A stretch of 64,000 nucleotides of DNA from assembly GCA_964057225.1 (NCBI GenBank), contig CAXKVF010000098.1, forward strand, positions 26,125 through 90,124, in the 5' to 3' direction. This document shows positions 8,449 through 64,000 of this stretch, one piece after another. This DNA comes from Auanema rhodensis. Taxonomy: Eukaryota; Animalia; Nematoda. Positions within the stretch are counted from its first letter, which is position 1. The number at the start of each line of letters is the position of its first letter. The notes beneath the pieces are model-generated. The model ran no database searches. It saw nothing but the letters and a program-made list of their open reading frames with translations, and had not been told where the DNA came from. The position numbers and the translations under genes are program-made.

Positions 8449-11400
8449 ATGGGGAATCTAATTTTGAAAACCGCATCTCTTTATCTTTCACGTGAAGCGA
8501 GTTACATACCAAGTGCACATCACGTGTACATTTAATTAGCATAAATTAAAGTTCACGTAAAATTCAAAGTCATGGTTACCATGCACCAATATCAATAAAA
8601 ATTTGTTTTTAGACTAATATGGACATGGGGAATCTAATTTTGAAAACCGCATCTCTTTATCTTTCACGTGAAGCGAGTTACATACCAAGTGCACATCACG
8701 TGTACATTTAATTAGCATAAATTAAAGTTCACGTAAATTTCAAAGTCATGGTTACCATGAACCAATATCAATAAAAATTTGTTTTTAGACTAATATGGAC
8801 ATGGGAATCTAATTTTGAAAACCGCATCTCTTTATCTTTCACGTGAAGCGAGTTACATACCAAGTGCACATCACGTGTACATTTAATTAGCATAAATTAA
8901 AGTTCACGTAAATTTCAAAGTCATGGTTACCATGAACCAATATCAATAAAAATTTGTTTTTAGACTAATATGGACATGGGGAATCTAATTTTGAAAACCG
9001 CATCTCTTTATCTTTCACGTGAAGCGAGTTACATACCAAGTGCACATCACGTGTACATTTAATTAGCATAAATTAAAGTTCACGTAAATTTCAAAGTCAT
9101 GGTTACCATGAACCAATATCAATAAAAATTTGTTTTTAGACTAATATGGACATGGGGAATCTAATTTTGAAAACCGCATCTCTTTATCTTTCACGTGAAG
9201 CGAGTTACATACCAAGTGCACATCACGTGTACATTTAATTAGCATAAATTAAAGTTCACGTAAATTTCAAAGTCATGGTTACCATGAAGCAATATCAATA
9301 AAAATTTGTTTTTAGACTAATATGGACATGGGGAATCTAATTTTGAAAACCGCATCTCTTTATCTTTCACGTGAAGCGAGTTACATACCAAGTGCACATC
9401 ACGTGTACATTTAATTAGCATAAATTAAAGTTCACGTAAATTTCAAAGTCATGGTTACCATGCACCAATATCAATAAAAATTTGTTTTTAGACTAATATG
9501 GACATGGGGAATCTAATTTTGAAAACCGCATCTCTTTATCTTTCACGTGAAGCGAGTTACATACCAAGTGCACATCACGTGTACATTTAATTAGCATAAA
9601 TTAAAGTTCACGTAAATTTCAAAGTCATGGTTACCATGAACCAATATCAATAAAAATTTGTTTTTAGACTAATATGGACATGGGGAATCTAATTTTAAAA
9701 ACCGCATCTCTTTATCTTTCACGTGAAGCGAGTTACATACCAAGTGCACATCACGTGTACATTTAATTAGCATAAATTAAAGTTCACGTAAATTTCAAAG
9801 TCATGGTTACCATGAAGCAATATCAATAAAAATTTGTTTTTAGACTAATATGGACATGGGGAATCTAATTTTGAAAACCGCATCTCTTTATCTTTCACGT
9901 GAAGCGAGTTACATACCAAGTGCACATCACGTGTACATTTAATTAGCATAAATTAAAGTTCACGTAAATTTCAAAGTCATGGTTACCATGAACCAATATC
10001 AATAAAAATTTGTTTTTAGACTAATATGGACATGGGGAATCTAATTTTGAAAACCGCATCTCTTTATCTTTCACGTGAAGCGAGTTACATACCAAGTGCA
10101 CATCACGTGTACATTTAATTAGCATAAATTAAAGTTCACGTAAATTTCAAAGTCATGGTTACCATGCACCAATATCAATAAAAATTTGTTTTTAGACTAA
10201 TATGGACATGGGGAATCTATTTTTGAAAACCGCATCTCTTTATCTTTCACGTGAAGCGAGTTACATACCAAGTGCACATCACGTGTACATTTAATTAGCA
10301 TAAATTAAAGTTCACGTAAATTTCAAAGTCATGGTTACCATGAAGCAATATCAATAAAAATTTGTTTTTAGACTAATATGGACATGGGGAATCTATTTTT
10401 GAAAACCGCATCTCTTTATCTTTCACGTGAAGCGAGTTACATACCAAGTGCACATCACGTGTACATTTAATTAGCATAAATTAAAGTTCACGTAAATTTC
10501 AAAGTCATGGTTACCATGAAGCAATATCAATAAAAATTTGTTTTTAGACTAATATGGACATGGGGAATCTAATTTTGAAAACCGCATCTCTTTATCTTTC
10601 ACGTGAAGCGAGTTACATACCAAGTGCACATCACGTGTACATTTAATTAGCATAAATTAAAGTTCACGTAAATTTCAAAGTCATGGTTACCATGAACCAA
10701 TATCAATAAAAATTTGTTTTTAGACTAATATGGACATGGGGAATCTAATTTTGAAAACCGCATCTCTTTATCTTTCACGTGAAGCGAGTTACATACCAAG
10801 TGCACATCACGTGTACATTTAATTAGCATAAATTAAAATTCACGTAAATTTCAAAGTCATGGTTACCATGCACCAATATCAATAAAAATTTGTTTTTAGA
10901 CTAATATGGACATGGGGAATCTAATTTTGAAAACCGCATCTCTTTATCTTTCACGTGAAGCGAGTTACATACCAAGTGCACATCACGTGTACATTTAATT
11001 AGCATAAATTAAAGTTCACGTAAATTTCAAAGTCATGGTTACCATGCACCAATATCAATAAAAATTTGTTTTTAGACTAATATGGACATGGGGAATCTAA
11101 TTTTGAAAACCGCATCTCTTTATCTTTCACGTGAAGCGAGTTACATACCAAGTGCACATCACGTGTACATTTGATTAGCATAAATTAAAGTTCACGTAAA
11201 TTTCAAAGTCATGGTTACCATGAACCAATATCAATAAAAATTTGTTTTTAGACTAATATGGACATGGGGAATCTAATTTTGAAAACCGCATCTCTTTATC
11301 TTTCACGTGAAGCGAGTTACATACCAAGTGCACATCACGTGTACATTTAATTAGCATAAATTAAAGTTCACGTAAATTTCAAAGTCATGGTTACCATGAA

Positions 11401-30799: not shown

Positions 30800-33700
30800 A
30801 TGGGGATTCTAATTTTGAAAATCGCATCTCTTTATCTTTCACGTGAAGCGAGTTACATACCAAGTGTACATCAAGTGTACATTTAATTAGCATAAATTAA
30901 AGTTCACGTAAATTTCAAAGTCATGGTTACCATGCACCAATATCAATAAAAATTTGTTTTTAGACTAATATGGACATGGGGAATCTAATTTTGAAAACCG
31001 CATCTCTTTATCTTTCACGTGAAGCGAGTTACATACCAAGTGCACATCACGTGTACATTTAATTAGCATAAATTAAAGTTCACGTAAATTTCAAAGTCAT
31101 GGTTACCATGAACCAATATCAATAAAAATTTGTTTTTAGACTAATATGGACATGGGGAATCTAATTTTGAAAACCGCATCTCTTTATCTTTCACGTGAAG
31201 CGAGTTACATACCAAGTGCACATCACGTGTACATTTAATTAGCATAAATTAAAGTTCACGTAAATTTCAAAGTCATGGTTACCATGCACCAATATCAATA
31301 AAAATTTGTTTTTAGACTAATATGGACATGGGGAATCTAATTTTGAAAACCGCATCTCTTTATCTTTCACGTGAAGCGAGTTACATACCAAGTGCACATC
31401 ACGTGTACATTTAATTAGCATAAATTAAAGTTCACGTAAATTTCAAAGTCATGGTTACCATGAACCAATATCAATAAAAATTTGTTTTTAGACTAATATG
31501 GACATGGGGATTCTAATTTTGAAAATCGCATCTCTTTATCTTTCACGTGAAGCGAGTTACATACCAAGTGTACATCTAGTGTACATTTAATTAGCATAAA
31601 TTAAAGTTCACGTAAATTTCAAAGTCATGGTTACCATGCACCAATATCAATAAAAATTTGTTTTTAGACTAATATGGACATGGGGAATCTAATTTTGAAA
31701 ACCGCATCTCTTTATCTTTCACGTGAAGCGAGTTACATACCAAGTGCACATCACGTGTACATTTAATTAGCATGAATTAAAGTTCACGTAAATTTCAAAG
31801 TCATGGTTACCATGAACCAATATCAATAAAAATTTGTTTTTAGACTAATATGGACATGGGGAATCTAATTTTGAAAACCGCATCTCTTTATCTTTCACGT
31901 GAAGCGAGTTACATACCAAGTGCACATCACGTGTACATTTAATTAGCATAAATTAAAGTTCACGTAAATTTCAAAGTCATGGTTACCATGAACCAATATC
32001 AATAAAAATTTGTTTTTAGACTAATATGGACATGGGGAATCTAATTTTGAAAACCGCATCTCTTTATCTTTCACGTGAAGCGAGTTACATACCAAGTGCA
32101 CATCACGTGTACATTTAATTAGCATAAATTAAAGTTCACGTAAATTTCAAAGTCATGGTTACCATGCACCAATATCAATAAAAATTTGTTTTTAGACTAA
32201 TATGGACATGGGGAATCTAATTTTGAAAACCGCATCTCTTCATCTTTCACGTGAAGCGAGTTACATACCAAGTGCACATCACGTGTACATTTAATTAGCA
32301 TAAATTAAAGTTCACGTAAATTTCAAAGTCATGGTTACCATGCACCAATATCAATAAAAATTTGTTTTTAGACTAATATGGACATGGGGAATCTAATTTT
32401 GAAAACCGCATCTCTTTATCTTTCACGTGAAGCGAGTTACATACCAAGTGCACATCACGTGTACATTTAATTAGCATAAATTAAAGTTCACGTAAATTTC
32501 AAAGTCATGGTTACCATGAACCAATATCAATAAAAATTTGTTTTTAGACTAATATGGACATGGGGAATCTAATTTTGAAAACCGCATCTCTTTATCTTTC
32601 ACGTTAAGCGAGTTACATACCAAGTGCACATCACGTGTACATTTAATTAGCATAAATTAAAGTTCACGTAAATTTCAAAGTCATGGTTACCATGAACCAA
32701 TATCAATAAAAATTTGTTTTTAGACTAATATGGACATGGGGAATCTAATTTTGAAAACCGCATCTCTTTATCTTTCACGTGAAGCGAGTTACATACCAAG
32801 TGCACATCACGTGTACATTTAATTAGCATAAATTAAAGTTCACGTAAATTTCAAAGTCATGGTTACCATGAACCAATATCAATAAAAATTTGTTTTTAGA
32901 CTAATATGGACATGGGGATTCTAATTTTGAAAATCGCATCTCTTTATCTTTCACGTGAAGCGAGTTACATACCAAGTGTACATCAAGTGTACATTTAATT
33001 AGCATAAATTAAAGTTCACGTAAATTTCAAAGTCATGGTTACCATGCACCAATATCAATAAAAATTTGTTTTTAGACTAATATGGACATGGGGAATCTAA
33101 TTTTGAAAACCGCATCTCTTTATCTTTCACGTGAAGCGAGTTACATACCAAGTGCACATCACGTGTACATTTAATTAGCATAAATTAAAGTTCACGTAAA
33201 TTTCAAAGTCATGGTTACCATGAACCAATATCAATAAAAATTTGTTTTTAGACTAATATGGACATGGGGAATCTAATTTTGAAAACCGCATCTCTTTATC
33301 TTTCACGTGAAGCGAGTTACATACCAAGTGCACATCACGTGTACATTTAATTAGCATAAATTAAAGTTCACGTAAATTTCAAAGTCATGGTTACCATGAA
33401 CCAATATCAATAAAAATTTGTTTTTAGACTAATATGGACATGGGGAATCTAATTTTGAAAACCGCATCTCTTTATCTTTCACGTGAAGCGAGTTACATAC
33501 CAAGTGCACATCACGTGTACATTTAATTAGCATAAATTAAAGTTCACGTAAATTTCAAAGTCATGGTTACCATGAACCAATATCAATAAAAATTTGTTTT
33601 TAGACTAATATGGACATGGGGATTCTAATTTTGAAAATCGCATCTCTTTATCTTTCACGTGAAGCGAGTTACATACCAAGTGTACATCTAGTGTACATTT

Positions 33701-35023
33701 AATTAGCATAAATTAAAGTTCACGTAAATTTCAAAGTCATGGTTACCATGCACCAATATCAATAAAAATTTGTTTTTAGACTAATATGGACATGGGGAAT
33801 CTAATTTTGAAAACCGCATCTCTTTATCTTTCACGTGAAGCGAGTTACATACCAAGTGCACATCACGTGTACATTTAATTAGCATGAATTAAAGTTCACG
33901 TAAATTTCAAAGTCATGGTTACCATGAACCAATATCAATAAAAATTTGTTTTTAGACTAATATGGACATGGGGAATCTAATTTTGAAAACCGCATCTCTT
34001 TATCTTTCACGTGAAGCGAGTTACATACCAAGTGCACATCACGTGTACATTTAATTAGCATAAATTAAAGTTCACGTAAATTTCAAAGTCATGGTTACCA
34101 TGAACCAATATCAATAAAAATTTGTTTTTAGACTAATATGGACATGGGGAATCTAATTTTGAAAACCGCATCTCTTTATCTTTCACGTGAAGCGAGTTAC
34201 ATACCAAGTGCACATCACGTGTACATTTAATTAGCATAAATTAAAGTTCACGTAAATTTCAAAGTCATGGTTACCATGCACCAATATCAATAAAAATTTG
34301 TTTTTAGACTAATATGGACATGGGGAATCTAATTTTGAAAACCGCATCTCTTCATCTTTCACGTGAAGCGAGTTACATACCAAGTGCACATCACGTGTAC
34401 ATTTAATTAGCATAAATTAAAGTTCACGTAAATTTCAAAGTCATGGTTACCATGCACCAATATCAATAAAAATTTGTTTTTAGACTAATATGGACATGGG
34501 GAATCTAATTTTGAAAACCGCATCTCTTTATCTTTCACGTGAAGCGAGTTACATACCAAGTGCACATCACGTGTACATTTAATTAGCATAAATTAAAGTT
34601 CACGTAAATTTCAAAGTCATGGTTACCATGAACCAATATCAATAAAAATTTGTTTTTAGACTAATATGGACATGGGGAATCTAATTTTGAAAACCGCATC
34701 TCTTTATCTTTCACGTTAAGCGAGTTACATACCAAGTGCACATCACGTGTACATTTAATTAGCATAAATTAAAGTTCACGTAAATTTCAAAGTCATGGTT
34801 ACCATGAACCAATATCAATAAAAATTTGTTTTTAGACTAATATGGACATGGGGAATCTAATTTTGAAAACCGCATCTCTTTATCTTTCACGTGAAGCGAG
34901 TTACATACCAAGTGCACATCACGTGTACATTTAATTAGCATAAATTAAAGTTCACGTAAATTTCAAAGTCATGGTTACCATGCACCAATATCAATAAAAA
35001 TTTGTTTTTAGACTAATATGGAC
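30800..35023 (+). repeat. Tandem duplication of a 12-monomer block (2112 bp x2)
   Basis: Markers recur at a 2112-bp offset: 4-SNP monomer 30800/32912, TCTAG monomer 31504/33616, A95G 31774/33886, T34C 32241/34353, G46T 32605/34717. Confidence 0.92.
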
Positions 35024-40831: not shown

Positions 40832-43800
40832 ATGGGGAATCTAATTTTGAAAACCGCATCTCTTCATCTTTCACGTGAAGCGAGTTACATACGAAGTGCA
40901 CATCACGTGTACATTTAATTAGCATAAATTAAAGTTCACGTAAATTTCAAAGTCATGGTTACCATGCACCAATATCGATAAAAATTTGTTTTTAGACTAA
41001 TATGGACATGGGGAATCTAATTTTGAAAACCGCATCTCTTTATCTTTCACGTGAAGCGAGTTACATACCAAGTGCACATCACGTGTACATTTAATTAGCA
41101 TAAATTAAAGTTCACGTAAATTTCAAAGTCATGGTTACCATGAACCAATATCAATAAAAATTTGTTTTTAGACTAATATGGACATGGGGAATCTAATTTT
41201 GAAAACCGCATCTCTTTATCTTTCACGTGAAGCGAGTTACATACCAAGTGCACATCACGTGTACATTTAATTAGCATAAATTAAAGTTCACGTAAATTTC
41301 AAAGTCATGGTTACCATGCACCAATATCAATAAAAATTTGTTTTTAGACTAATATGGACATGGGGAATCTAATTTTGAAAACCGCATCTCTTTATCTTTC
41401 AGGTGAAGCGAGTTACATACCAAGTGCACATCACGTGTACATTTAATTAGCATAAATTAAAGTTCACGTAAATTTCAAAGTCATGGTTACCATGAACCAA
41501 TATCAATAAAAATTTGTTTTTAGACTAATATGGACATGGGGAATCTAATTTTGAAAACCGCATCTCTTTACCTTTCACGAAAATCGCATCTCTTTATCTT
41601 TCACGTGAAGCGAGTTACATACCAAGTGTACATCTAGTGTACATTTAATTAGCATAAATTAAAGTTCACGTAAATTTCAAAGTCATGGTTACCATGCACC
41701 AATATCAATAAAAATTTGTTTTTAGACTAATATGGACATGGGGAATCTAATTTTGAAAACCGCATCTCTTTATCTTTCACGTGAAGCGAGTTACATACCA
41801 AGTGCACATCACGTGTACATTTAATTAGCATGAATTAAAGTTCACGTAAATTTCAAAGTCATGGTTACCATGAACCAATATCAATAAAAATTTGTTTTTA
41901 GACTAATATGGACATGGGGAATCTAATTTTGAAAACCGCATCTCTTTATCTTTCACGTGAAGCGAGTTACATACCAAGTGCACATCACGTGTACATTTAA
42001 TTAGCATAAATTAAAGTTCACGTAAATTTCAAAGTCATGGTTACCATGCACCAATATCGATAAAAATTTGTTTTTAGACTAATATGGACATGGGGAATCT
42101 AATTTTGAAAACCGCATCTCTTTATCTTTCACGTGAAGCGAGTTACATACCAAGTGCACATCACGTGTACATTTAATTAGCATAAATTAAAGTTCACGTA
42201 AATTTCAAAGTCATGGTTACCATGAACCAATATCAATAAAAATTTGTTTTTAGACTAATATGGACATGGGGAATCTAATTTTGAAAACCGCATCTCTTTA
42301 TCTTTCACGTGAAGCGAGTTACATACCAAGTGCACATCACGTGTACATTTAATTAGCATAAATTAAAGTTCACGTAAATTTCAAAGTCATGGTTACCATG
42401 CACCAATATCAATAAAAATTTGTTTTTAGACTAATATGGACATGGGGAATCTAATTTTGAAAACCGCATCTCTTTATCTTTCAGGTGAAGCGAGTTACAT
42501 ACCAAGTGCACATCACGTGTACATTTAATTAGCATAAATTAAAGTTCACGTAAATTTCAAAGTCATGGTTACCATGAACCAATATCAATAAAAATTTGTT
42601 TTTAGACTAATATGGACATGGGGAATCTAATTTTGAAAACCGCATCTCTTTACCTTTCACGAAAATCGCATCTCTTTATCTTTCACGTGAAGCGAGTTAC
42701 ATACCAAGTGTACATCTAGTGTACATTTAATTAGCATAAATTAAAGTTCACGTAAATTTCAAAGTCATGGTTACCATGCACCAATATCAATAAAAATTTG
42801 TTTTTAGACTAATATGGACATGGGGAATCTAATTTTGAAAACCGCATCTCTTTATCTTTCACGTGAAGCGAGTTACATACCAAGTGCACATCACGTGTAC
42901 ATTTAATTAGCATGAATTAAAGTTCACGTAAATTTCAAAGTCATGGTTACCATGAACCAATATCAATAAAAATTTGTTTTTAGACTAATATGGACATGGG
43001 GAATCTAATTTTGAAAACCGCATCTCTTTATCTTTCACGTGAAGCGAGTTACATACCAAGTGCACATCACGTGTACATTTAATTAGCATAAATTAAAGTT
43101 CACGTAAATTTCAAAGTCATGGTTACCATGCACCAATATCAATAAAAATTTGTTTTTAGACTAATATGGACATGGGGAATCTAATTTTGAAAACCGCATC
43201 TCTTTATCTTTCACGTGAAGCGAGTTACATACCAAGTGCACATCACGTGTACATTTAATTAGCATAAATTAAAGTTCACGTAAATTTCAAAGTCATGGTT
43301 ACCATGAACCAATATCAATAAAAATTTGTTTTTAGACTAATATGGACATGGGGAATCTAATTTTGAAAACCGCATCTCTTTATCTTTCACGTGAAGCGAG
43401 TTACATACCAAGTGCACATCACGTGTACATTTAATTAGCATAAATTAAAGTTCACGTAAATTTCAAAGTCATGGTTACCATGAACCAATATCAATAAAAA
43501 TTTGTTTTTAGACTAATATGGACATGGGGAATCTAATTTTGAAAACCGCATCTCTTTATCTTTCACGTGAAGCGAGTTACATACCAAGTGCACATCACGT
43601 GTACATTTAATTAGCATAAATTAAAGTTCACGTAAATTTCAAAGTCATGGTTACCATGCACCAATATCAATAAAAATTTGTTTTTAGACTAATATGGACA
43701 TGGGGAATCTAATTTTGAAAACCGCATCTCTTCATCTTTCACGTGAAGCGAGTTACATACGAAGTGCACATCACGTGTACATTTAATTAGCATAAATTAA

Positions 43801-46800
43801 AGTTCACGTAAATTTCAAAGTCATGGTTACCATGCACCAATATCGATAAAAATTTGTTTTTAGACTAATATGGACATGGGGAATCTAATTTTGAAAACCG
43901 CATCTCTTTATCTTTCACGTGAAGCGAGTTACATACCAAGTGCACATCACGTGTACATTTAATTAGCATAAATTAAAGTTCACGTAAATTTCAAAGTCAT
44001 GGTTACCATGAACCAATATCAATAAAAATTTGTTTTTAGACTAATATGGACATGGGGAATCTAATTTTGAAAACCGCATCTCTTTATCTTTCACGTGAAG
44101 CGAGTTACATACCAAGTGCACATCACGTGTACATTTAATTAGCATAAATTAAAGTTCACGTAAATTTCAAAGTCATGGTTACCATGCACCAATATCAATA
44201 AAAATTTGTTTTTAGACTAATATGGACATGGGGAATCTAATTTTGAAAACCGCATCTCTTTATCTTTCAGGTGAAGCGAGTTACATACCAAGTGCACATC
44301 ACGTGTACATTTAATTAGCATAAATTAAAGTTCACGTAAATTTCAAAGTCATGGTTACCATGAACCAATATCAATAAAAATTTGTTTTTAGACTAATATG
44401 GACATGGGGAATCTAATTTTGAAAACCGCATCTCTTTACCTTTCACGAAAATCGCATCTCTTTATCTTTCACGTGAAGCGAGTTACATACCAAGTGTACA
44501 TCTAGTGTACATTTAATTAGCATAAATTAAAGTTCACGTAAATTTCAAAGTCATGGTTACCATGCACCAATATCAATAAAAATTTGTTTTTAGACTAATA
44601 TGGACATGGGGAATCTAATTTTGAAAACCGCATCTCTTTATCTTTCACGTGAAGCGAGTTACATACCAAGTGCACATCACGTGTACATTTAATTAGCATG
44701 AATTAAAGTTCACGTAAATTTCAAAGTCATGGTTACCATGAACCAATATCAATAAAAATTTGTTTTTAGACTAATATGGACATGGGGAATCTAATTTTGA
44801 AAACCGCATCTCTTTATCTTTCACGTGAAGCGAGTTACATACCAAGTGCACATCACGTGTACATTTAATTAGCATAAATTAAAGTTCACGTAAATTTCAA
44901 AGTCATGGTTACCATGCACCAATATCAATAAAAATTTGTTTTTAGACTAATATGGACATGGGGAATCTAATTTTGAAAACCGCATCTCTTTATCTTTCAC
45001 GTGAAGCGAGTTACATACCAAGTGCACATCACGTGTACATTTAATTAGCATAAATTAAAGTTCACGTAAATTTCAAAGTCATGGTTACCATGAACCAATA
45101 TCAATAAAAATTTGTTTTTAGACTAATATGGACATGGGGAATCTAATTTTGAAAACCGCATCTCTTTATCTTTCACGTGAAGCGAGTTACATACCAAGTG
45201 CACATCACGTGTACATTTAATTAGCATAAATTAAAGTTCACGTAAATTTCAAAGTCATGGTTACCATGAACCAATATCAATAAAAATTTGTTTTTAGACT
45301 AATATGGACATGGGGAATCTAATTTTGAAAACCGCATCTCTTTATCTTTCACGTGAAGCGAGTTACATACCAAGTGCACATCACGTGTACATTTAATTAG
45401 CATAAATTAAAGTTCACGTAAATTTCAAAGTCATGGTTACCATGCACCAATATCAATAAAAATTTGTTTTTAGACTAATATGGACATGGGGAATCTAATT
45501 TTGAAAACCGCATCTCTTCATCTTTCACGTGAAGCGAGTTACATACGAAGTGCACATCACGTGTACATTTAATTAGCATAAATTAAAGTTCACGTAAATT
45601 TCAAAGTCATGGTTACCATGCACCAATATCGATAAAAATTTGTTTTTAGACTAATATGGACATGGGGAATCTAATTTTGAAAACCGCATCTCTTTATCTT
45701 TCACGTGAAGCGAGTTACATACCAAGTGCACATCACGTGTACATTTAATTAGCATAAATTAAAGTTCACGTAAATTTCAAAGTCATGGTTACCATGAACC
45801 AATATCAATAAAAATTTGTTTTTAGACTAATATGGACATGGGGAATCTAATTTTGAAAACCGCATCTCTTTATCTTTCACGTGAAGCGAGTTACATACCA
45901 AGTGCACATCACGTGTACATTTAATTAGCATAAATTAAAGTTCACGTAAATTTCAAAGTCATGGTTACCATGCACCAATATCAATAAAAATTTGTTTTTA
46001 GACTAATATGGACATGGGGAATCTAATTTTGAAAACCGCATCTCTTTATCTTTCAGGTGAAGCGAGTTACATACCAAGTGCACATCACGTGTACATTTAA
46101 TTAGCATAAATTAAAGTTCACGTAAATTTCAAAGTCATGGTTACCATGAACCAATATCAATAAAAATTTGTTTTTAGACTAATATGGACATGGGGAATCT
46201 AATTTTGAAAACCGCATCTCTTTACCTTTCACGAAAATCGCATCTCTTTATCTTTCACGTGAAGCGAGTTACATACCAAGTGTACATCTAGTGTACATTT
46301 AATTAGCATAAATTAAAGTTCACGTAAATTTCAAAGTCATGGTTACCATGCACCAATATCAATAAAAATTTGTTTTTAGACTAATATGGACATGGGGAAT
46401 CTAATTTTGAAAACCGCATCTCTTTATCTTTCACGTGAAGCGAGTTACATACCAAGTGCACATCACGTGTACATTTAATTAGCATGAATTAAAGTTCACG
46501 TAAATTTCAAAGTCATGGTTACCATGAACCAATATCAATAAAAATTTGTTTTTAGACTAATATGGACATGGGGAATCTAATTTTGAAAACCGCATCTCTT
46601 TATCTTTCACGTGAAGCGAGTTACATACCAAGTGCACATCACGTGTACATTTAATTAGCATAAATTAAAGTTCACGTAAATTTCAAAGTCATGGTTACCA
46701 TGCACCAATATCAATAAAAATTTGTTTTTAGACTAATATGGACATGGGGAATCTAATTTTGAAAACCGCATCTCTTTATCTTTCACGTGAAGCGAGTTAC

Positions 46801-49233
46801 ATACCAAGTGCACAACACGTGTACATTTAATTAGCATAAATTAAAGTTCACGTAAATTTCAAAGTCATGGTTACCATGAACCAATATCAATAAAAATTTG
46901 TTTTTAGACTAATATGGACATGGGGAATCTAATTTTGAAAACCGCATCTCTTTATCTTTCACGTGAAGCGAGTTACATACCAAGTGCACATCACGTGTAC
47001 ATTTAATTAGCATAAATTAAAGTTCACGTAAATTTCAAAGTCATGGTTACCATGAACCAATATCAATAAAAATTTGTTTTTAGACTAATATGGACATGGG
47101 GAATCTAATTTTGAAAACCGCATCTCTTTATCTTTCACGTGAAGCGAGTTACATACCAAGTGCACATCACGTGTACATTTAATTAGCATAAATTAAAGTT
47201 CACGTAAATTTCAAAGTCATGGTTACCATGAACCAATATCAATAAAAATTTGTTTTTAGACTAATATGGACATGGGGATTCTAATTTTGAAAATCGCATC
47301 TCTTTATCTTTCACGTGAAGCGAGTTACATACCAAGTGTACATCAAGTGTACATTTAATTAGCATAAATTAAAGTTCACGTAAATTTCAAAGTCATGGTT
47401 ACCATGCACCAATATCAATAAAAATTTGTTTTTAGACTAATATGGACATGGGGAATCTAATTTTGAAAACCGCATCTCTTTATCTTTCACGTGAAGCGAG
47501 TTACATACCAAGTGCACATCACGTGTACATTTAATTAGCATAAATTAAAGTTCACGTAAATTTCAAAGTCATGGTTACCATGAACCAATATCAATAAAAA
47601 TTTGTTTTTAGACTAATATGGACATGGGGAATCTAATTTTGAAAACCGCATCTCTTTATCTTTCACGTGAAGCGAGTTACATACCAAGTGCACATCACGT
47701 GTACATTTAATTAGCATAAATTAAAGTTCACGTAAATTTCAAAGTCATGGTTACCATGCACCAATATCAATAAAAATTTGTTTTTAGACTAATATGGACA
47801 TGGGGAATCTAATTTTGAAAACCGCATCTCTTTATCTTTCAGGTGAAGCGAGTTACATACCAAGTGCACATCACGTGTACATTTAATTAGCATAAATTAA
47901 AGTTCACGTAAATTTCAAAGTCATGGTTACCATGAACCAATATCAATAAAAATTTGTTTTTAGACTAATATGGACATGGGGAATCTAATTTTGAAAACCG
48001 CATCTCTTTACCTTTCACGAAAATCGCATCTCTTTATCTTTCACGTGAAGCGAGTTACATACCAAGTGTACATCTAGTGTACATTTAATTAGCATAAATT
48101 AAAGTTCACGTAAATTTCAAAGTCATGGTTACCATGCACCAATATCAATAAAAATTTGTTTTTAGACTAATATGGACATGGGGAATCTAATTTTGAAAAC
48201 CGCATCTCTTTATCTTTCACGTGAAGCGAGTTACATACCAAGTGCACATCACGTGTACATTTAATTAGCATGAATTAAAGTTCACGTAAATTTCAAAGTC
48301 ATGGTTACCATGAACCAATATCAATAAAAATTTGTTTTTAGACTAATATGGACATGGGGAATCTAATTTTGAAAACCGCATCTCTTTATCTTTCACGTGA
48401 AGCGAGTTACATACCAAGTGCACATCACGTGTACATTTAATTAGCATAAATTAAAGTTCACGTAAATTTCAAAGTCATGGTTACCATGCACCAATATCAA
48501 TAAAAATTTGTTTTTAGACTAATATGGACATGGGGAATCTAATTTTGAAAACCGCATCTCTTTATCTTTCACGTGAAGCGAGTTACATACCAAGTGCACA
48601 TCACGTGTACATTTAATTAGCATAAATTAAAGTTCACGTAAATTTCAAAGTCATGGTTACCATGAACCAATATCAATAAAAATTTGTTTTTAGACTAATA
48701 TGGACATGGGGAATCTAATTTTGAAAACCGCATCTCTTTATCTTTCACGTGAAGCGAGTTACATACCAAGTGCACATCACGTGTACATTTAATTAGCATA
48801 AATTAAAGTTCACGTAAATTTCAAAGTCATGGTTACCATGAACCAATATCAATAAAAATTTGTTTTTAGACTAATATGGACATGGGGAATCTAATTTTGA
48901 AAACCGCATCTCTTTATCTTTCACGTGAAGCGAGTTACATACCAAGTGCACATCACGTGTACATTTAATTAGCATAAATTAAAGTTCACGTAAATTTCAA
49001 AGTCATGGTTACCATGAACCAATATCAATAAAAATTTGTTTTTAGACTAATATGGACATGGGGATTCTAATTTTGAAAATCGCATCTCTTTATCTTTCAC
49101 GTGAAGCGAGTTACATACCAAGTGTACATCAAGTGTACATTTAATTAGCATAAATTAAAGTTCACGTAAATTTCAAAGTCATGGTTACCATGCACCAATA
49201 TCAATAAAAATTTGTTTTTAGACTAATATGGAC
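40832..49233 (+). repeat. Local higher-order repeat: 10-monomer unit of 1786 bp (one 202-bp + nine 176-bp monomers), with a 6-mer derivative
   Basis: 202-bp marker monomers start at 41536, 42618, 44404, 46190 and 47976 (spacings 1082, 1786, 1786, 1786). Units 42618-44403 and 44404-46189 share the same ordered markers: A95G, then T34C+C62G+A146G, then C43G. Confidence 0.95.
41536..41737 (+). repeat. 202-bp variant monomer with 26-bp internal duplication (copies at 41536, 42618, 44404, 46190, 47976, 51170)
   Basis: AAAACCGCATCTCTTTACCTTTCACG is followed directly by AAAATCGCATCTCTTTATCTTTCACG (monomer positions 19-44 twice). The next monomer starts 202 bp later. Confidence 0.97.
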
Positions 49234-52200
49234 ATGGGGAATCTAATTTTGAAAACCGCATCTCTTTATCTTTCACGTGAAGCGAGTTACATACCAAGTG
49301 CACATCACGTTTACATTTAATTAGCATAAATTAAAGTTCACGTAAATTTCAAAGTCATGGTTACCATGAACCAATATCAATAAAAATTTGTTTTTAGACT
49401 AATATGGACATGGGGAATCTAATTTTGAAAACCGCATCTCTTTATCTTTCACGTGAAGCGAGTTACATACCAAGTGCACATCACGTGTACATTTAATTAG
49501 CATAAATTAAAGTTCACGTAAATTTCAAAGTCATGGTTACCATGAACCAATATCAATAAAAATTTGTTTTTATACTAATATGGACATGGGGAATCTAATT
49601 TTGAAAACCGCATCTCTTTATCTTTCACGTGAAGCGAGTTACATACCAAGTGCACATCACGTGTACATTTAATTAGCATAAATTAAAGTTCACGTAAATT
49701 TCAAAGTCATGGTTACCATGCACCAATATCAATAAAAATTTGTTTTTAGACTAATATGGACATGGGGAATCTAATTTTGAAAACCGCATCTCTTCATCTT
49801 TCACGTGAAGCGAGTTACATACCAAGTGCACATCACGTGTACATTTAATTAGCATAAATTAAAGTTCACGTAAATTTCAAAGTCATGGTTACCATGCACC
49901 AATATCAATAAAAATTTGTTTTTAGACTAATATGGACATGGGGAATCTAATTTTGAAAACCGCATCTCTTTATCTTTCACGTGAAGCGAGTTACATACCA
50001 AGTGCACATCACGTGTACATTTAATTAGCATAAATTAAAGTTCACGTAAATTTCAAAGTCATGGTTACCATGAACCAATATCAATAAAAATTTGTTTTTA
50101 GACTAATATGGACATGGGGAATCTAATTTTGAAAACCGCATCTCTTTATCTTTCACGTGAAGCGAGTTACATACCAAGTGCACATCACGTGTACATTTAA
50201 TTAGCATAAATTAAAGTTCACGTAAATTTCAAAGTCATGGTTACCATGAACCAATATCAATAAAAATTTGTTTTTAGACTAATATGGACATGGGGAATCT
50301 AATTTTGAAAACCGCATCTCTTTATCTTTCACGTGAAGCGAGTTACATACCAAGTGCACATCACGTGTACATTTAATTAGCATAAATTAAAGTTCACGTA
50401 AATTTCAAAGTCATGGTTACCATGCACCAATATCAATAAAAATTTGTTTTTAGACTAATATGGACATGGGGAATCTAATTTTGAAAACCGCATCTCTTCA
50501 TCTTTCACGTGAAGCGAGTTACATACCAAGTGCACATCACGTGTACATTTAATTAGCATAAATTAAAGTTCACGTAAATTTCAAAGTCATGGTTACCATG
50601 CACCAATATCGATAAAAATTTGTTTTTAGACTAATATGGACATGGGGAATCTAATTTTGAAAACCGCATCTCTTTATCTTTCACGTGAAGCGAGTTACAT
50701 ACCAAGTGCACATCACGTGTACATTTAATTAGCATAAATTAAAGTTCACGTAAATTTCAAAGTCATGGTTACCATGAACCAATATCAATAAAAATTTGTT
50801 TTTAGACTAATATGGACATGGGGAATCTAATTTTGAAAACCGCATCTCTTTATCTTTCACGTGAAGCGAGTTACATACCAAGTGCACATCACGTGTACAT
50901 TTAATTAGCATAAATTAAAGTTCACGTAAATTTCAAAGTCATGGTTACCATGCACCAATATCGATAAAAATTTGTTTTTAGACTAATATGGACATGGGGA
51001 ATCTAATTTTGAAAACCGCATCTCTTTATCTTTCACGTGAAGCGAGTTACATACCAAGTGCACATCACGTGTACATTTAATTAGCATAAATTAAAGTTCA
51101 CGTAAATTTCAAAGTCATGGTTACCATGAACCAATATCAATAAAAATTTGTTTTTAGACTAATATGGACATGGGGAATCTAATTTTGAAAACCGCATCTC
51201 TTTACCTTTCACGAAAATCGCATCTCTTTATCTTTCACGTGAAGCGAGTTACATACCAAGTGTACATCTAGTGTACATTTAATTAGCATAAATTAAAGTT
51301 CACGTAAATTTCAAAGTCATGGTTACCATGCACCAATATCAATAAAAATTTGTTTTTAGACTAATATGGACATGGGGAATCTAATTTTGAAAACCGCATC
51401 TCTTTATCTTTCACGTGAAGCGAGTTACATACCAAGTGCACATCACGTGTACATTTAATTAGCATGAATTAAAGTTCACGTAAATTTCAAAGTCATGGTT
51501 ACCATGAACCAATATCAATAAAAATTTGTTTTTAGACTAATATGGACATGGGGAATCTAATTTTGAAAACCGCATCTCTTTATCTTTCACGTGAAGCGAG
51601 TGACATACCAAGTGCACATCACGTGTACATTTAATTAGCATAAATTAAAGTTCACGTAAATTTCAAAGTCATGGTTACCATGAACCAATATCAATAAAAA
51701 TTTGTTTTTAGACTAATATGGACATGGGGAATCTAATTTTGAAAACCGCATCTCTTTATCTTTCACGTGAAGCGAGTTACATACCAAGTGCACATCACGT
51801 GTACATTTAATTAGCATAAATTAAAGTTCACGTAAATTTCAAAGTCATGGTTACCATGCACCAATATCAATAAAAATTTGTTTTTAGACTAATATGGACA
51901 TGGGGAATCTAATTTTGAAAACCGCATCTCTTCATCTTTCACGTGAAGCGAGTTACATACCAAGTGCACATCACGTGTACATTTAATTAGCATAAATTAA
52001 AGTTCACGTAAATTTCAAAGTCATGGTTACCATGCACCAATATCAATAAAAATTTGTTTTTAGACTAATATGGACATGGGGAATCTAATTTTGAAAACCG
52101 CATCTCTTTATCTTTCACGTGAAGCGAGTTACATACCAAGTGCACATCACGTGTACATTTAATTAGCATAAATTAAAGTTCACGTAAATTTCAAAGTCAT

Positions 52201-54539
52201 GGTTACCATGAACCAATATCAATAAAAATTTGTTTTTAGACTAATATGGACATGGGGAATCTAATTTTGAAAACCGCATCTCTTTATCTTTCACGTGAAG
52301 CGAGTTACATACCAAGTGCACATCACGTGTACATTTAATTAGCATAAATTAAAGTTCACGTAAATTTCAAAGTCATGGTTACCATGCACCAATATCAATA
52401 AAAATTTGTTTTTAGACTAATATGGACATGGGGAATCTAATTTTGAAAACCGCATCTCTTTATCTTTCACGTGAAGCGAGTTACATACCAAGTGCACATC
52501 ACGTGTACATTTAATTAGCATAAATTAAAGTTCACGTAAATTTCAAAGTCATGGTTACCATGAACCAATATCAATAAAAATTTGTTTTTAGACTAATATG
52601 GACATGGGGAATCTAATTTTGAAAACCGCATCTCTTTACCTTTCACGTGAAGCGAGTTACATACCAAGTGCACATCACGTGTACATTTAATTAGCATAAA
52701 TTAAAGTTCACGTAAATTTCAAAGTCATGGTTACCATGCACCAATATCAATAAAAATTTGTTTTTAGACTAATATGGACATGGGGAATCTAATTTTGAAA
52801 ACCGCATCTCTTTATCTTTCACGTGAAGCGAGTTACATACCAAGTGCACATCACGTGTACATTTAATTAGCATAAATTAAAGTTCACGTAAATTTCAAAG
52901 TCATGGTTACCATGAACCAATATCAATAAAAATTTGTTTTTAGACTAATATGGACATGGGGAATCTAATTTTGAAAACCGCATCTCTTTATCTTTCCCGT
53001 GAAGCGAGTTACATACCAAGTGCACATCACGTGTACATTTAATTAGCATAAATTAAAGTTCACGTAAATTTCAAAGTCATGGTTACCATGAACCAATATC
53101 AATAAAAATTTGTTTTTAGACTAATATGGACATGGGGAATCTAATTTTGAAAACCGCATCTCTTTATCTTTCACGTGAAGCGAGTTACATACCAAGTGCA
53201 CATCACGTGTACATTTAATTAGCATAAATTAAAGTTCACGTAAATTTCAAAGTCATGGTTACCATGCACCAATATCAATAAAAATTTGTTTTTAGACTAA
53301 TATGGACATGGGGAATCTAATTTTGAAAACCGCATCTCTTCATCTTTCACGTGAAGCGAGTTACATACCAAGTGCACATCACGTGTACATTTAATTAGCA
53401 TAAATTAAAGTTCACGTAAATTTCAAAGTCATGGTTACCATGCACCAATATCAATAAAAATTTGTTTTTAGACTAATATGGACATGGGGAATCTAATTTT
53501 GAAAACCGCATCTCTTTATCTTTCACGTGAAGCGAGTTACATACCAAGTGCACATCACGTGTACATTTAATTAGAATAAATTAAAGTTCACGTAAATTTC
53601 AAAGTCATGGTTACCATGAAGCAATATCAATAAAAATTTGTTTTTAGACTAATATGGACATGGGGAATCTAATTTTGAAAACCGCATCTCTTTATCTTTC
53701 ACGTGAAGCGAGTTACATACCAAGTGCACATCACGTGTACATTTAATTAGCATAAATTAAAGTTCACGTAAATTTCAAAGTCATGGTTACCATGCACCAA
53801 TATCAATAAAAATTTGTTTTTAGACTAATATGGACATGGGGAATCTAATTTAGAATACCGCATCTCTTTATCTTTTACGTGAAGCGAGTTACATACCAAG
53901 TGCACATCACGTGTACATTTAATTAGCATAAATTAAAGTTCACGTAAATTTCAAAGTCATGGTTACCATGAACCAATATCAATAAAAATTTGTTTTTAGA
54001 CTAATATGGACATGGGGAATCTAATTTTGAAAACCGCATCTCTTTATCTTTCACGTGAAGCGAGTTACATACCAAGTGCACATCACGTGTACATTTAATT
54101 AGCATAAATTAAAGTTCACGTAAATTTCAAAGTCATGGTTACCATGAAGCAATATCAATAAAAATTTGTTTTTAGACTAATATGGACATGGGGAATCTAA
54201 TTTTGAAAACCGCATCTCTTTATCTTTCACGTGAAGCGAGTTACATACCAAGTGCACATCACGTGTACATTTAATTAGCATAAAATAAAGTTCACGTAAA
54301 TTTCAAAGTCATGGTTACCATGAACCAATATCAATAAAAATTTGTTTTTAGACTAATATGGACATGGGGAATCTAATTTTGAAAACCGCATCTCTTTATC
54401 TTTCACGTGAAGCGAGTTACATACCAAGTGCACATCACGTGTACATTTAATTAGCATAAATTAAAGTTCACGTAAATTTCAAAGTCATGGTTACCATGCA
54501 CCAATATCAATAAAAATTTGTTTTTAGACTAATATGGAC

Positions 54540-59819: not shown

Positions 59820-62800
59820 ATGGGGAATCTAATTTTGAAAACCGCATCTCTTTATCTTTCACGTGAAGCGAGTTACATACCAAGTGCACATCACGTGTAC
59901 ATTTAATTAGCATAAATTAAAGTTCACGTAAATTTCAAAGTCATGGTTACCATGAACCAATATCAATAAAAATTTGTTTTTAGACTAATATGGACATGGG
60001 GAATCTAATTTTGAAAACCGCATCTCTTTATCTTTCACGTGAAGCGAGTTACATACCAAGTGCACATCACGTGTACATTTAATTAGCATAAATTAAAGTT
60101 CACGTAAATTTCAAAGTCATGGTTACCATGAACCAATATCAATAAAAATTTGTTTTTAGACTAATATGGACATGGGGAATCTAATTTTGAAAACCGCATC
60201 TCTTTATCTTTCACGTGAAGCGAGTTACATACCAAGTGCACATCACGTGTACATTTAATTAGCATAAATTAAAGTTCACGTAAATTTCAAAGTCATGGTT
60301 ACCATGAACCAATATCAATAAAAATTTGTTTTTAGACTAATATGGACATGGGGAATCTAATTTTGAAAACCGCATCTCTTTATCTTTCACGTGAAGCGAG
60401 TTACATACCAAGTGCACATCACGTGTACATTTAATTAGCATAAATTAAAGTTCACGTAAATTTCAAAGTCATGGTTACCATGAACCAATATCAATAAAAA
60501 TTTGTTTTTAGACTAATATGGACATGGGGAATCTAATTTTGAAAACCGCATCTCTTTATCTTTCACGTGAAGCGAGTTACATACCAAGTGCACATCACGT
60601 GTACATTTAATTAGCATAAATTAAAGTTCACGTAAATTTCAAAGTCATGGTTACCATGCACCAATATCAATAAAAATTTGTTTTTAGACTAATATGGACA
60701 TGGGGAATCTAATTTTGAAAACCGCATCTCTTCATCTTTCACGTGAAGCGAGTTACATACCAAGTGCACATCACGTGTACATTTAATTAGCATAAATTAA
60801 AGTTCACGTAAATTTCAAAGTCATGGTTACCATGCACCAATATCGATAAAAATTTGTTTTTAGACTAATATGGACATGGGGAATCTAATTTTGAAAACCG
60901 CATCTCTTTATCTTTCACGTGAAGCGAGTTACATACCAAGTGCACATCACGTGTACATTTAATTAGCATAAATTAAAGTTCACGTAAATTTCAAAGTCAT
61001 GGTTACCATGAACCAATATCAATAAAAATTTGTTTTTAGACTAATATGGACATGGGGAATCTAATTTTGAAAACCGCATCTCTTTATCTTTCACGTGAAG
61101 CGAGTTACATACCAAGTGCACATCACGTGTACATTTAATTAGCATAAATTAAAGTTCACGTAAATTTCAAAGTCATGGTTACCATGCACCAATATCAATA
61201 AAAATTTGTTTTTAGACTAATATGGACATGGGGAATCTAATTTTGAAAACCGCATCTCTTTATCTTTCACGTGAAGCGAGTTACATACCAAGTGCACATC
61301 ACGTGTACATTTAATTAGCATAAATTAAAGTTCACGTAAATTTCAAAGTCATGGTTACCATGAACCAATATCAATAAAAATTTGTTTTTAGACTAATATG
61401 GACATGGGGAATCTAATTTTGAAAACCGCATCTCTTTACCTTTCACGTGAAGCGAGTTACATACCAAGTGCACATCACGTGTACATTTAATTAGCATAAA
61501 TTAAAGTTCACGTAAATTTCAAAGTCATGGTTACCATGCACCAATATCAATAAAAATTTGTTTTTAGACTAATATGGACATGGGGAATCTAATTTTGAAA
61601 ACCGCATCTCTTTATCTTTCACGTGAAGCGAGTTACATACCAAGTGCACATCACGTGTACATTTAAATAGCATAAATTAAAGTTCACGTAAATTTCAAAG
61701 TCATGGTTACCATGAACCAATATCAATAAAAATTCGTTTTTAGACTAATATGGACATGGGGAATCTAATTTTGAAAACCGCATCTCTTTATCTTTCACGT
61801 GAAGCGAGTTACATACCAAGTGCACATCACGTGTACATTTAATTAGCATAAATTAAAGTTCACGTAAATTTCAAAGTCATGGTTACCATGAACCAATATC
61901 AATAAAAATTTGTTTTTAGACTAATATGGACATGGGGAATCTAATTTTGAAAACCGCATCTCTTTATCTTTCACGTGAAGCGAGTTACATACCAAGTGCA
62001 CATCACGTGTACATTTAATTAGCATAAATTAAAGTTCACGTAAATTTCAAAGTCATGGTTACCATGCACCAATATTAATAAAAATTTGTTTTTAGACTAA
62101 TATGGACATGGGGAATCTAATTTTGAAAACCGCATCTCTTTATCTTTCACGTGAAGCGAGTTACATACCAAGTGCACATCACGTGTACATTTAATTAGCA
62201 TAAATTAAAGTTCACGTAAATTTCAAAGTCATGGTTACCATGAACCAATATCAATAAAAATTTGTTTTTAGACTAATATGGACATGGGGATTCTAATTTT
62301 GAAAATCGCATCTCTTTATCTTTCACGTGAAGCGAGTTACATACCAAGTGTACATCAAGTGTACATTTAATTAGCATAAATTAAAGTTCACGTAAATTTC
62401 AAAGTCATGGTTACCATGCACCAATATCAATAAAAATTTGTTTTTAGACTAATATGGACATGGGGAATCTAATTTTGAAAACCGCATCTCTTTATCTTTC
62501 ACGTGAAGCGAGTTACATACCAAGTGCACATCACGTGTACATTTAATTAGCATAAATTAAAGTTCACGTAAATTTCAAAGTCATGGTTACCATGAACCAA
62601 TATCAATAAAAATTTGTTTTTAGACTAATATGGACATGGGGAATCTAATTTTGAAAACCGCATCTCTTTATCTTTCACGTGAAGCGAGTTACATACCAAG
62701 TGCACATCACGTGTACATTTAATTAGCATAAATTAAAGTTCACGTAAATTTCAAAGTCATGGTTACCATGCACCAATATCAATAAAAATTTGTTTTTAGA

Positions 62801-64000
62801 ATAATATGGACATGGGGAATCTAATTTTGAAAACCGCATCTCTTTATCTTTCACGTGAAGCGAGTTACATACCAAGTGCACATCACGTGTACATTTAATT
62901 AGCATGAATTAAAGTTCACGTAAATTTCAAAGTCATGGTTACCATGACCAATATCAATAAAAATTTGTTTTTAGACTAATATGGACATGGGGAATCTAAT
63001 TTTGAAAACCGCATCTCTTCATCTTTCACGTGAAGCGAGTTACATACCAAGTGCACATCACGTGTACATTTAATTAGCATAAATTAAAGTTCACGTAAAT
63101 TTCAAAGTCATGGTTACCATGAACCAATATCAATAAAAATTTGTTTTTAGACTAATATGGACATGGGGAATCTAATTTTGAAAACCGCATCTCTTTATCT
63201 TTCACGTGAAGCGAGTTACATACCAAGTGCACATCACGTGTACATTTAATTAGCATAAATTAAAGTTCACGTAAATTTCAAAGTCATGGTTACCATGCAC
63301 CAATATCAATAAAAATTTGTTTTTAGACTAATATGGACATGGGGAATCTAATTTTGAAAACCGCATCTCTTTATCTTTCACGTGAAGCGAGTTACATACC
63401 AAGTGCACATCACGTGTACATTTAATTAGCATAAATTAAAGTTCACGTAAATTTCAAAGTCATGGTTACCATGAACCAATATCAATAAAAATTTGTTTTT
63501 AGACTAATATGGACATGGGGAATCTAATTTTGAAAACCGCATCTCTTTATCTTTCACGTGAAGCGAGTTACATACCAAGTGCACATCACGTGTACATTTG
63601 ATTAGCATAAATTAAAGTTCACGTAAATTTCAAAGTCATGGTTACCATGCACCAATATCAATAAAAATTTGTTTTTAGACTAATATGGACATGGGGAATC
63701 TAATTTTGAAAACCGCATCTCTTTATCTTTCACGTGAAGCGAGTTACATACCAAGTGCACATCACGTGTACATTTAATTAGCATAAATTAAAGTTCACGT
63801 AAATTTCAAAGTCATGGTTACCATGAACCAATATCAATAAAAATTTGTTTTTAGACTAATATGGACATGGGAAATCTAATTTTGAAAACCGCATCTCTTT
63901 ATCTTTCACGTGAAGCGAGTTACATACCAAGTGCACATCACGTGTACATTTAATTAGCATAAATTAAAGTTCACGTAAATTTCAAAGTCATGGTTACCAT

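Follow-up and report, generated by a model that had tools for sequence, protein, structure and literature searches.

A 202-bp monomer in the AT-1 satellite of Auanema rhodense is an out-of-register chimera of two monomer types

The question of how satellites acquire monomers of a new length is raised by a stretch of 64,000 bp of the genome of the nematode Auanema rhodense (positions 26125-90124 of contig C105, from here on the window), in which an uninterrupted array of a 176-bp satellite, the AT-1 repeat, carries six monomers of 202 bp. In this work we analyzed the make-up of these monomers, the array around them and the rest of the assembly, which comprises 181 Mb in 112 contigs. From these analyses we conclude that the 202-bp monomer is a chimera of two monomer types that survive intact in the same array.

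Tandem Repeats Finder (TRF) describes positions 1-64000 (forward strand) as one array with a period of 176 bp, 362.8 copies and a 98% match; the G+C content of the unit is 32%. Segmentation of the window gives 362 monomers, of which 354 measure 176 bp, 2 measure 175 bp and 6 measure 202 bp. A preprint dealing with Auanema rhodense prints the sequence of a 28-nt probe for fluorescence in situ hybridization (FISH) of AT-1, and its available passages place AT-1 at both ends of all autosomes (bioRxiv 10.64898/2026.08.27.747507). This probe coincides exactly with positions 56-83 of the window consensus and has 323 matches in the window, so that the satellite can be identified, by its sequence, as AT-1. 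[quoted passage not shown] Contig C105 is unplaced and consists entirely of satellite. The location at autosome ends is also found in the assembly, where the final 109 kb of the 24.7-Mb contig C1 are AT-1 satellite. In this respect the published description and ours are alike, with AT-1 forming arrays on several contigs, the end of C1 among them, in a genome of 181 Mb; monomer variants, higher-order repeats (HORs) and junctions within AT-1 are not treated in the passages of the preprint covered here (bioRxiv 10.64898/2026.08.27.747507).

The 202-bp monomer and its parents

The 202-bp monomers occupy positions 41536-41737, 42618-42819, 44404-44605, 46190-46391, 47976-48177 and 51170-51371 of the window, all on the forward strand. 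They had been noticed in an earlier reading of the letters of this stretch (the sequence-only reading), and both the segmentation and TRF, which separately reports six local repeats of 26 bp/202 bp in the window, recover them. All six are identical to one another and to two further copies on contig C1. Bases 1-44 differ from the consensus by T36C only; the remaining 158 bases correspond to positions 19-176 and carry C23T, C68T, A74T, C75A and A136C. Bases 19-44 are present twice, and 44 plus 158 bases make up 202 bp instead of the normal 176 bp. The join is G44|A19 (41579|41580 in the first copy), with one ambiguous base, a G (G18 or G44), and no filler. It sits in what would be a perfect 10-bp palindrome, TTCACGTGAA, at monomer positions 39-48. 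The site within the palindrome and the single G of microhomology agree with what the sequence-only reading had described. The ends of the duplicated segment have only this 1 bp (G18/G44) in common as a direct repeat, which is not the pattern of slippage.

Two intact monomers of the type that supplied the left part, with T36C and A136C, are present at 52604-52779 and 61404-61579, and two of the type that supplied the right part (A8T, C23T, C68T, A74T, C75A and A136C, designated B') at 31504-31679 and 33616-33791, all of them on the forward strand. When the 354 canonical monomers were compared with the 202-bp monomer, bases 1-44 were matched exactly by those at 52604 and 61404 only, and bases 45-202 were identical to bases 19-176 of those at 31504 and 33616 only. 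Apart from the join, the 202-bp monomer shows no difference from these two parents. None of the 354 fits both halves, and the best model of an in-place duplication leaves 3 mismatches. If an A74T monomer had been duplicated in place, A8T and C23T would be expected in the left half, and neither is present there.

The surroundings of the chimera point to the same parents. We compared 704-1,408 bp on each side of the copy at 51170 with the corresponding sequence next to every other monomer, the monomer itself being ignored. Among 350 monomers, that at 61404 has the best left flank, with 1 mismatch in 1,056 bp, and that at 52604 is in the top three; on the right, 31504 and 33616 are the best of 350, with 1 mismatch in 704 bp. 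Individual variants tell the same. The monomer at 61404 is preceded by a T34C+A136C+A146G monomer, a consensus monomer, an A136C monomer and another consensus monomer, and the same order is found before the 202-bp monomers. On the other side, A95G monomers (n=8) are found in the window exclusively after a 202-bp monomer or after the two B' monomers (31504 and 33616). For about 17 monomers, apart from small indels, the order downstream of 33616 follows that downstream of the chimera at 51170.

A search of the whole assembly gave a third line of evidence. The word that spans the junction, a search for which the sequence-only reading had suggested, occurs 8 times on two contigs, 6 times in the window and 2 times on C1, with the same two halves each time. 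The A74T word occurs 12 times, that is, in the 8 chimeras and in 4 intact monomers, all at this locus. That reading had also named 202-bp monomers with identical halves as the mark of single-nucleotide differences that arose after a duplication in place; none is present in the assembly, with either base accepted at positions 23 and 36 and two mismatches permitted. In all 8 copies the halves differ at both of these positions, which is not what a slippage-type duplication, with both copies derived from one monomer, would leave.

The exact fit, the flanks and the genome-wide words are independent tests and they concur: the 202-bp monomer is a chimera of two monomer types. Its prefix is that of one existing type, its suffix that of another, and its flanks continue both parental contexts; with 202 bp against 176 bp, it is not an in-register hybrid. 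The claim of the sequence-only reading that the halves stem from different monomer types is therefore upheld by the fit and by the ranking of the flanks, and variant calls confirm the particulars on which it was built, namely the intact T36C monomers (which carry A136C too), the order of monomers before 61404, and the B' monomers with an A95G monomer next to each.

A related haplotype with five single-nucleotide polymorphisms (SNPs), A8T C23T C68T C75A A136C, is carried by 17 monomers in the window (30800, 32912, 35200 and 14 more), spaced by about 4-5 monomers in parts of it. The two 175-bp monomers (8625-8799 and 62812-62986) have a 1-bp deletion each.

Origin and amplification of the junction

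Along the array, in C105 as in C1, the A74T (B') monomers come first, then the chimeras, and then the T36C monomers. The chimera has the downstream type fused to the upstream type, the geometry of a tandem duplication, of an unequal join between sister chromatids or of the closure of a circle; in this the sequence-only reading was right. An intact T36C monomer is located exactly 1,434 bp (8 monomers plus 26 bp) downstream of the chimera at 51170, and the six monomers that precede it resemble the six that precede the chimera (3 mismatches in 1,056 bp). This spacing and the matching flanks are the signature of a duplication of 8 monomers.

The two junctions on C1 lie about 35 kb from the end of that contig, on the opposite strand. 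We aligned the final 109 kb of C1 and the remainder of C105 monomer by monomer, and found that C105:39500-90124 (window 13376-64000) is colinear with C1:24680098-24729076, the last 49 kb of the contig (loci L001-L006 and L040). Rare variants are common to both copies in the same order, 165 of the 222 aligned monomers are of identical type, and the divergence of aligned monomers is 0.19%, compared with 1.31% for monomers paired at random. In about 50 kb there are 46 blocks of 1-16 monomers private to one copy. C105 and the end of C1 are two diverged copies of one array, and they could be alleles, recent paralogues or alternative assemblies. C105 reaches 39.5 kb beyond the end of C1.

The chimeras occur in at least two contexts. 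At 41536 the monomer before the chimera carries C43G, and the copy at 51170 has the least derived flanks, with neither C43G nor C62G on its left. On C1, one chimera stands in the C43G-flanked context and the other in a plainer one, as at 51170; they are 3,722 bp apart. Since C1 holds both contexts, both predate the split between C105 and C1. The four extra copies of the C43G context in C105 (6,440 bp) would be younger, or would have been lost or collapsed in C1.

Successive chimeras in the window are 1082, 1786, 1786, 1786 and 3194 bp apart. The 1,786-bp unit that begins with the copy at 42618 (42618-44403) is identical to the next one (44404-46189), with 0 mismatches, the mean difference between monomers being 1.31%, so that multi-monomer units are far more alike than monomers, as in a HOR. 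The third unit of this period, which begins at 46190, has another monomer make-up and 9 mismatches to the preceding two. Given the eight identical copies of the chimera and the identical 1,786-bp units, the amplification is recent. The sequence-only reading had described a later amplification to six copies, to which the two on C1 are now added, and had proposed that the junction seeded a new HOR. This second claim could not be established; the junction is found in two contexts or more, in irregular blocks, and in only two copies on C1, and its hitch-hiking in amplified blocks fits as well as a seeding role.

We consider that the chimera arose by an out-of-register, non-homologous join of two monomer types within one AT-1 array, made in one step and amplified later, and we give this a probability of about 0.8. 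A strand whose end was G44 of a T36C-type monomer would have been joined, with an overlap of at most 1 bp, to A19 of a B' monomer located upstream in the same array, either within one DNA molecule or in the sister chromatid. Such a join would duplicate bases 19-44 and also, on a larger scale, the part of the array that separates the two monomers; we infer that a duplication of 1,434 bp, equal to 8 monomers and 26 bp, would be the smallest that fits the surviving layout. The overlap of 1 bp, the lack of filler and the lack of long homology are those of end joining or of a template switch, and the route may have been the joining of a broken end or a switch of template during replication, two routes which the sequence cannot separate. 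The junction would then have travelled passively with its surrounding blocks as these were multiplied by unequal exchange, first to the two contexts also present in the sister copy on C1, and then to the five copies of the C43G-flanked context in C105.

Some observations weigh against this reading. The T36C word occurs 59 times across many arrays, that is, it is not private to the locus and is a weak marker by itself, so that the argument for a chimera rests on the combination of markers. A simple duplication of 8 monomers predicts a B' and an A95G monomer at -8 and -7 from the chimera at 51170, and they are not there: at these places C105 has a T34C+A136C and a consensus monomer, and on C1 a monomer of B type that lacks A74T and one with C68T+C75A are found. 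The strict model of a tandem duplication of 8 monomers was accordingly discarded; either the site was overwritten by later events or the original duplication was larger. Finally, the evidence for the junction comes from the assembly.

The alternative that survives best, which we nevertheless regard as unlikely, is that the chimera was made in two steps, a 26-bp duplication in place within a B' monomer being followed by a homologous unequal exchange or a long conversion with a T36C monomer, through which all sequence left of the junction was replaced. In-place duplications with identical halves are common in AT-1 (one of 24 bp at C1:24668830, others of 21 bp and 8 bp), and the 46 monomer-scale indel blocks between the two array copies indicate that exchange between monomers is frequent. 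However, the exchange would have to end within the 8 bp between the marker at 36 and the junction, about 5% of the monomer, no intermediate with identical halves occurs anywhere in the assembly, and two events are needed where one suffices.

Less likely again is a circular intermediate, in which a stretch of the array was excised and closed on itself, creating the T36C-to-B' junction, and then returned to the array either as the circle itself or as a rolling-circle copy. The orientation is that of a circle closure, downstream type to upstream type, and several identical blocks bearing the junction lie close together; however, no second novel junction marks a reinsertion (a homologous reinsertion would leave none), the unequal spacings (1082, 1786 and 3194 bp) are unlike the products of a rolling circle, and nothing separates this route from an unequal join between sister chromatids. 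It is very improbable that an error, either in read consensus or in the assembly of an array of near-identical monomers, produced the 26-bp duplication: satellite arrays are hard to assemble, the evidence comes from an assembly and C105 is an unplaced contig made of satellite, but the same 202-bp sequence is found eight times, with different surrounding monomers, on two separately assembled contigs, a double recovery that speaks against an artefact, and its halves exactly match real neighboring haplotypes, as those of a random error would not.

The C1 array holds three single-copy irregular monomers (loci L001 and L041). That at C1:24668830 measures 200 bp and has a 24-bp duplication of positions 47-70 with identical halves. 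Of the other two (C1:24653317 and C1:24652143), one has a 60-bp deletion and one is a 77-bp stump that lacks positions 49-147, its join lying at the edge of the palindrome and having an overlap of 2 bp.

Small rearrangements in AT-1 and the position of the break

The frequency of such junctions was surveyed in the whole assembly with gap patterns, in which two 12-nt anchors, matched exactly, are separated by a gap longer or shorter than normal. Insertions and deletions, both of 6-35 bp, were sought in four and eight search windows, respectively, and breakpoints were read by eye; patterns based on point variants were swamped by array-specific SNPs. The counts rest on the first 100 matches of each search (in search window B, 100 of 225) and the event counts are lower bounds. 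Three further events were added from 199 kb examined directly, and each event was counted once. At least 71 simple duplications or deletions, the chimera among them, were found in AT-1. At the join, 27 of these have an overlap of 0 bp, 19 of 1 bp and 12 of 2 bp (0-2 bp in 58/71), and the 1 bp of the chimera is typical.

Several of these forms have been amplified locally. A 166-bp monomer that lacks positions 41-50 (the first CACGTG plus AAGC) is present in more than 90 copies in one array (C1:18005873-18228825), and a 197-bp monomer with a 21-bp duplication in more than 60 copies on C4 (from 1397 onward), C99 and C100. A second 197-bp form, with a different 21-bp duplication, fills the start of C3 (26361-146707); the copy numbers of the two 197-bp forms are in the dozens or hundreds. 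Among the copies of the C3 form, some have identical halves and others diverged ones. A 32-bp deletion between the two TCACGTG direct repeats is found on three contigs (C5:21589112, C79:359421 and C94:225443) and may have arisen more than once. Given so many small duplications and deletions with little overlap, often amplified, the chimera belongs to a common class. It stands out in that its halves differ and both of its parents survive.

The sequence-only reading had attributed the break to the palindrome. The position of the breakpoints was evaluated by rotation, each of the 70 events other than the chimera being shifted at random around the monomer. The palindrome zone (38-48) shows no enrichment, with 12 breakpoints against 9.1 expected (p=0.19), and neither does the right-hand breakpoint of the chimera, 17/18, with 3 against 2.7 (p=0.50). 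The exact junction position, 43/44, was hit 7 times against 2.7 expected (p=0.017). Junction index 44 is the most frequently hit of the 176 positions, with 8 of the 71 events when the chimera is included, and three separate deletions resume exactly at T45, with the joins 20|45, 23|45 and 9|45 and no overlap (C1:23513975, C4:5986798 and C4:654693). A hot zone at the three CACGT motifs was suggested by the duplications (p=0.004, within a range of 0.002-0.005), the zone having been chosen after inspection of the data; in the 40 deletions, for which the hypothesis was fixed beforehand, 15 were observed against 10.7 expected (p=0.09), and by the criterion set in advance a hot spot at the CACGT motifs is unsupported. 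A hairpin or cruciform finds no support either, as the fold of the junction region (-5.6 kcal/mol) is no more stable than those of shuffled sequences (z = -0.71). The passages of the preprint at hand report only 15 strong matches to the elimination motif (SFE) in all eliminated DNA (bioRxiv 10.64898/2026.08.27.747507); with matches so rare, the 10-bp palindrome of the monomer is not that motif, and this candidate is ruled out to the extent of those passages.

Transposable elements were considered as a source of breaks as well. Ten copies of long interspersed nuclear elements (LINEs) are flanked by AT-1 satellite. A LINE family with a (CAAA)n tail joins the satellite at 73|74, in the second CACGTG, in 5 cases genome-wide, and in 0 cases at the first CACGTG, where the chimera breaks; a LINE nuclease as the source of the break is therefore unsupported. 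The LINEs at L013, L015, L016, L018, L019 and L031, which have an open frame of 973 amino acids and a (CAAA)n tail, are joined at 73|74 within the ACGT of the second CACGTG. Those at L020, L021 and L022 have tails made mostly of TTTA repeats, with joins after position 100 (L020 and L021) and after 172 (L022), and in L017 the tail is the reverse complement of (CAAA)n and the join follows position 2. The C75A variant abolishes the second CACGTG, the target of the LINEs.

In view of the zone test, the deletions and the folding, a break caused by the palindrome was not established, and a causal role for it is only weakly supported. There is a modest hint that G44|T45 is fragile. That this site, which lies in the CACGTG core one base off the center of the palindrome, is a preferred point of breakage and rejoining in this germline-restricted satellite is a tentative idea, and a doubtful one. 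If it were true, a sequence-specific source of nicks or stalled forks would be implied, with the chimera as one of its products; candidates would be the nuclease of the LINEs that insert at 73|74 and a protein bound to the E-box-like site. Of the sequence-only reading, the chimera, the join out of register, the 1 bp of microhomology, the geometry of a duplication and the later amplification have stood; the palindrome as cause and the seeding of a HOR have not.

Comparison with other satellites and junctions

In satellites in general, unequal crossing-over leads to the formation of HORs, as in the Smith model and the HORs of alpha satellite, in which blocks of several monomers are copied as units. 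The array studied here behaves alike in that its units (0 differences in 1,786 bp) are far closer than its monomers (1.3%). In contrast, its amplified blocks, few in number and irregular, do not make up an established HOR array, and the founding join was non-homologous.

Junctions of tandem duplications with little or no microhomology arise by non-homologous or alternative end joining (NHEJ/alt-EJ), or by fork stalling and template switching or microhomology-mediated break-induced replication (FoSTeS/MMBIR). The AT-1 junction is like them, head-to-tail, with an overlap of 0-1 bp and no filler; it is particular in that both partners are inside one satellite.

The locus is a clean and datable example of a satellite that gains a new monomer form, in which the parents and a diverged sister array survive. 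Turnover of the AT-1 arrays in A. rhodense is rapid and proceeds through gains and losses at the scale of monomers, and most of the duplication and deletion junctions surveyed across the genome have little or no overlap. These observations bear on the question, raised in the available passages of the Auanema preprint, of how large blocks of eliminated repeats accumulate (bioRxiv 10.64898/2026.08.27.747507). The general picture of satellite evolution is unchanged; the chimera represents an ordinary step, unusually well documented, and a worked example of turnover in a germline-restricted satellite.

The closest parallel is provided by the hybrid monomers of human alpha satellite (Uralsky 2019; Dvorkina 2020/2021; HORmon, Kunyavskaya et al. 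2022, PMC9248890), which, like the 202-bp monomer, consist of a prefix of one type and a suffix of another. They are likewise rare and recent, their number varies between genomes, and they have been proposed as a source of new array units (PMC9248890). The alpha-satellite hybrids cited in that work are joined in register, with 50+120, 92+78 or 60+111 bases giving about 171 bp (PMC9248890), whereas the Auanema join is 26 bp out, and with an overlap of 1 bp it cannot be the product of a homologous crossover. Unlike the alpha-satellite hybrids, the Auanema chimera unites parents that differ by only a few SNPs and that are themselves rare.

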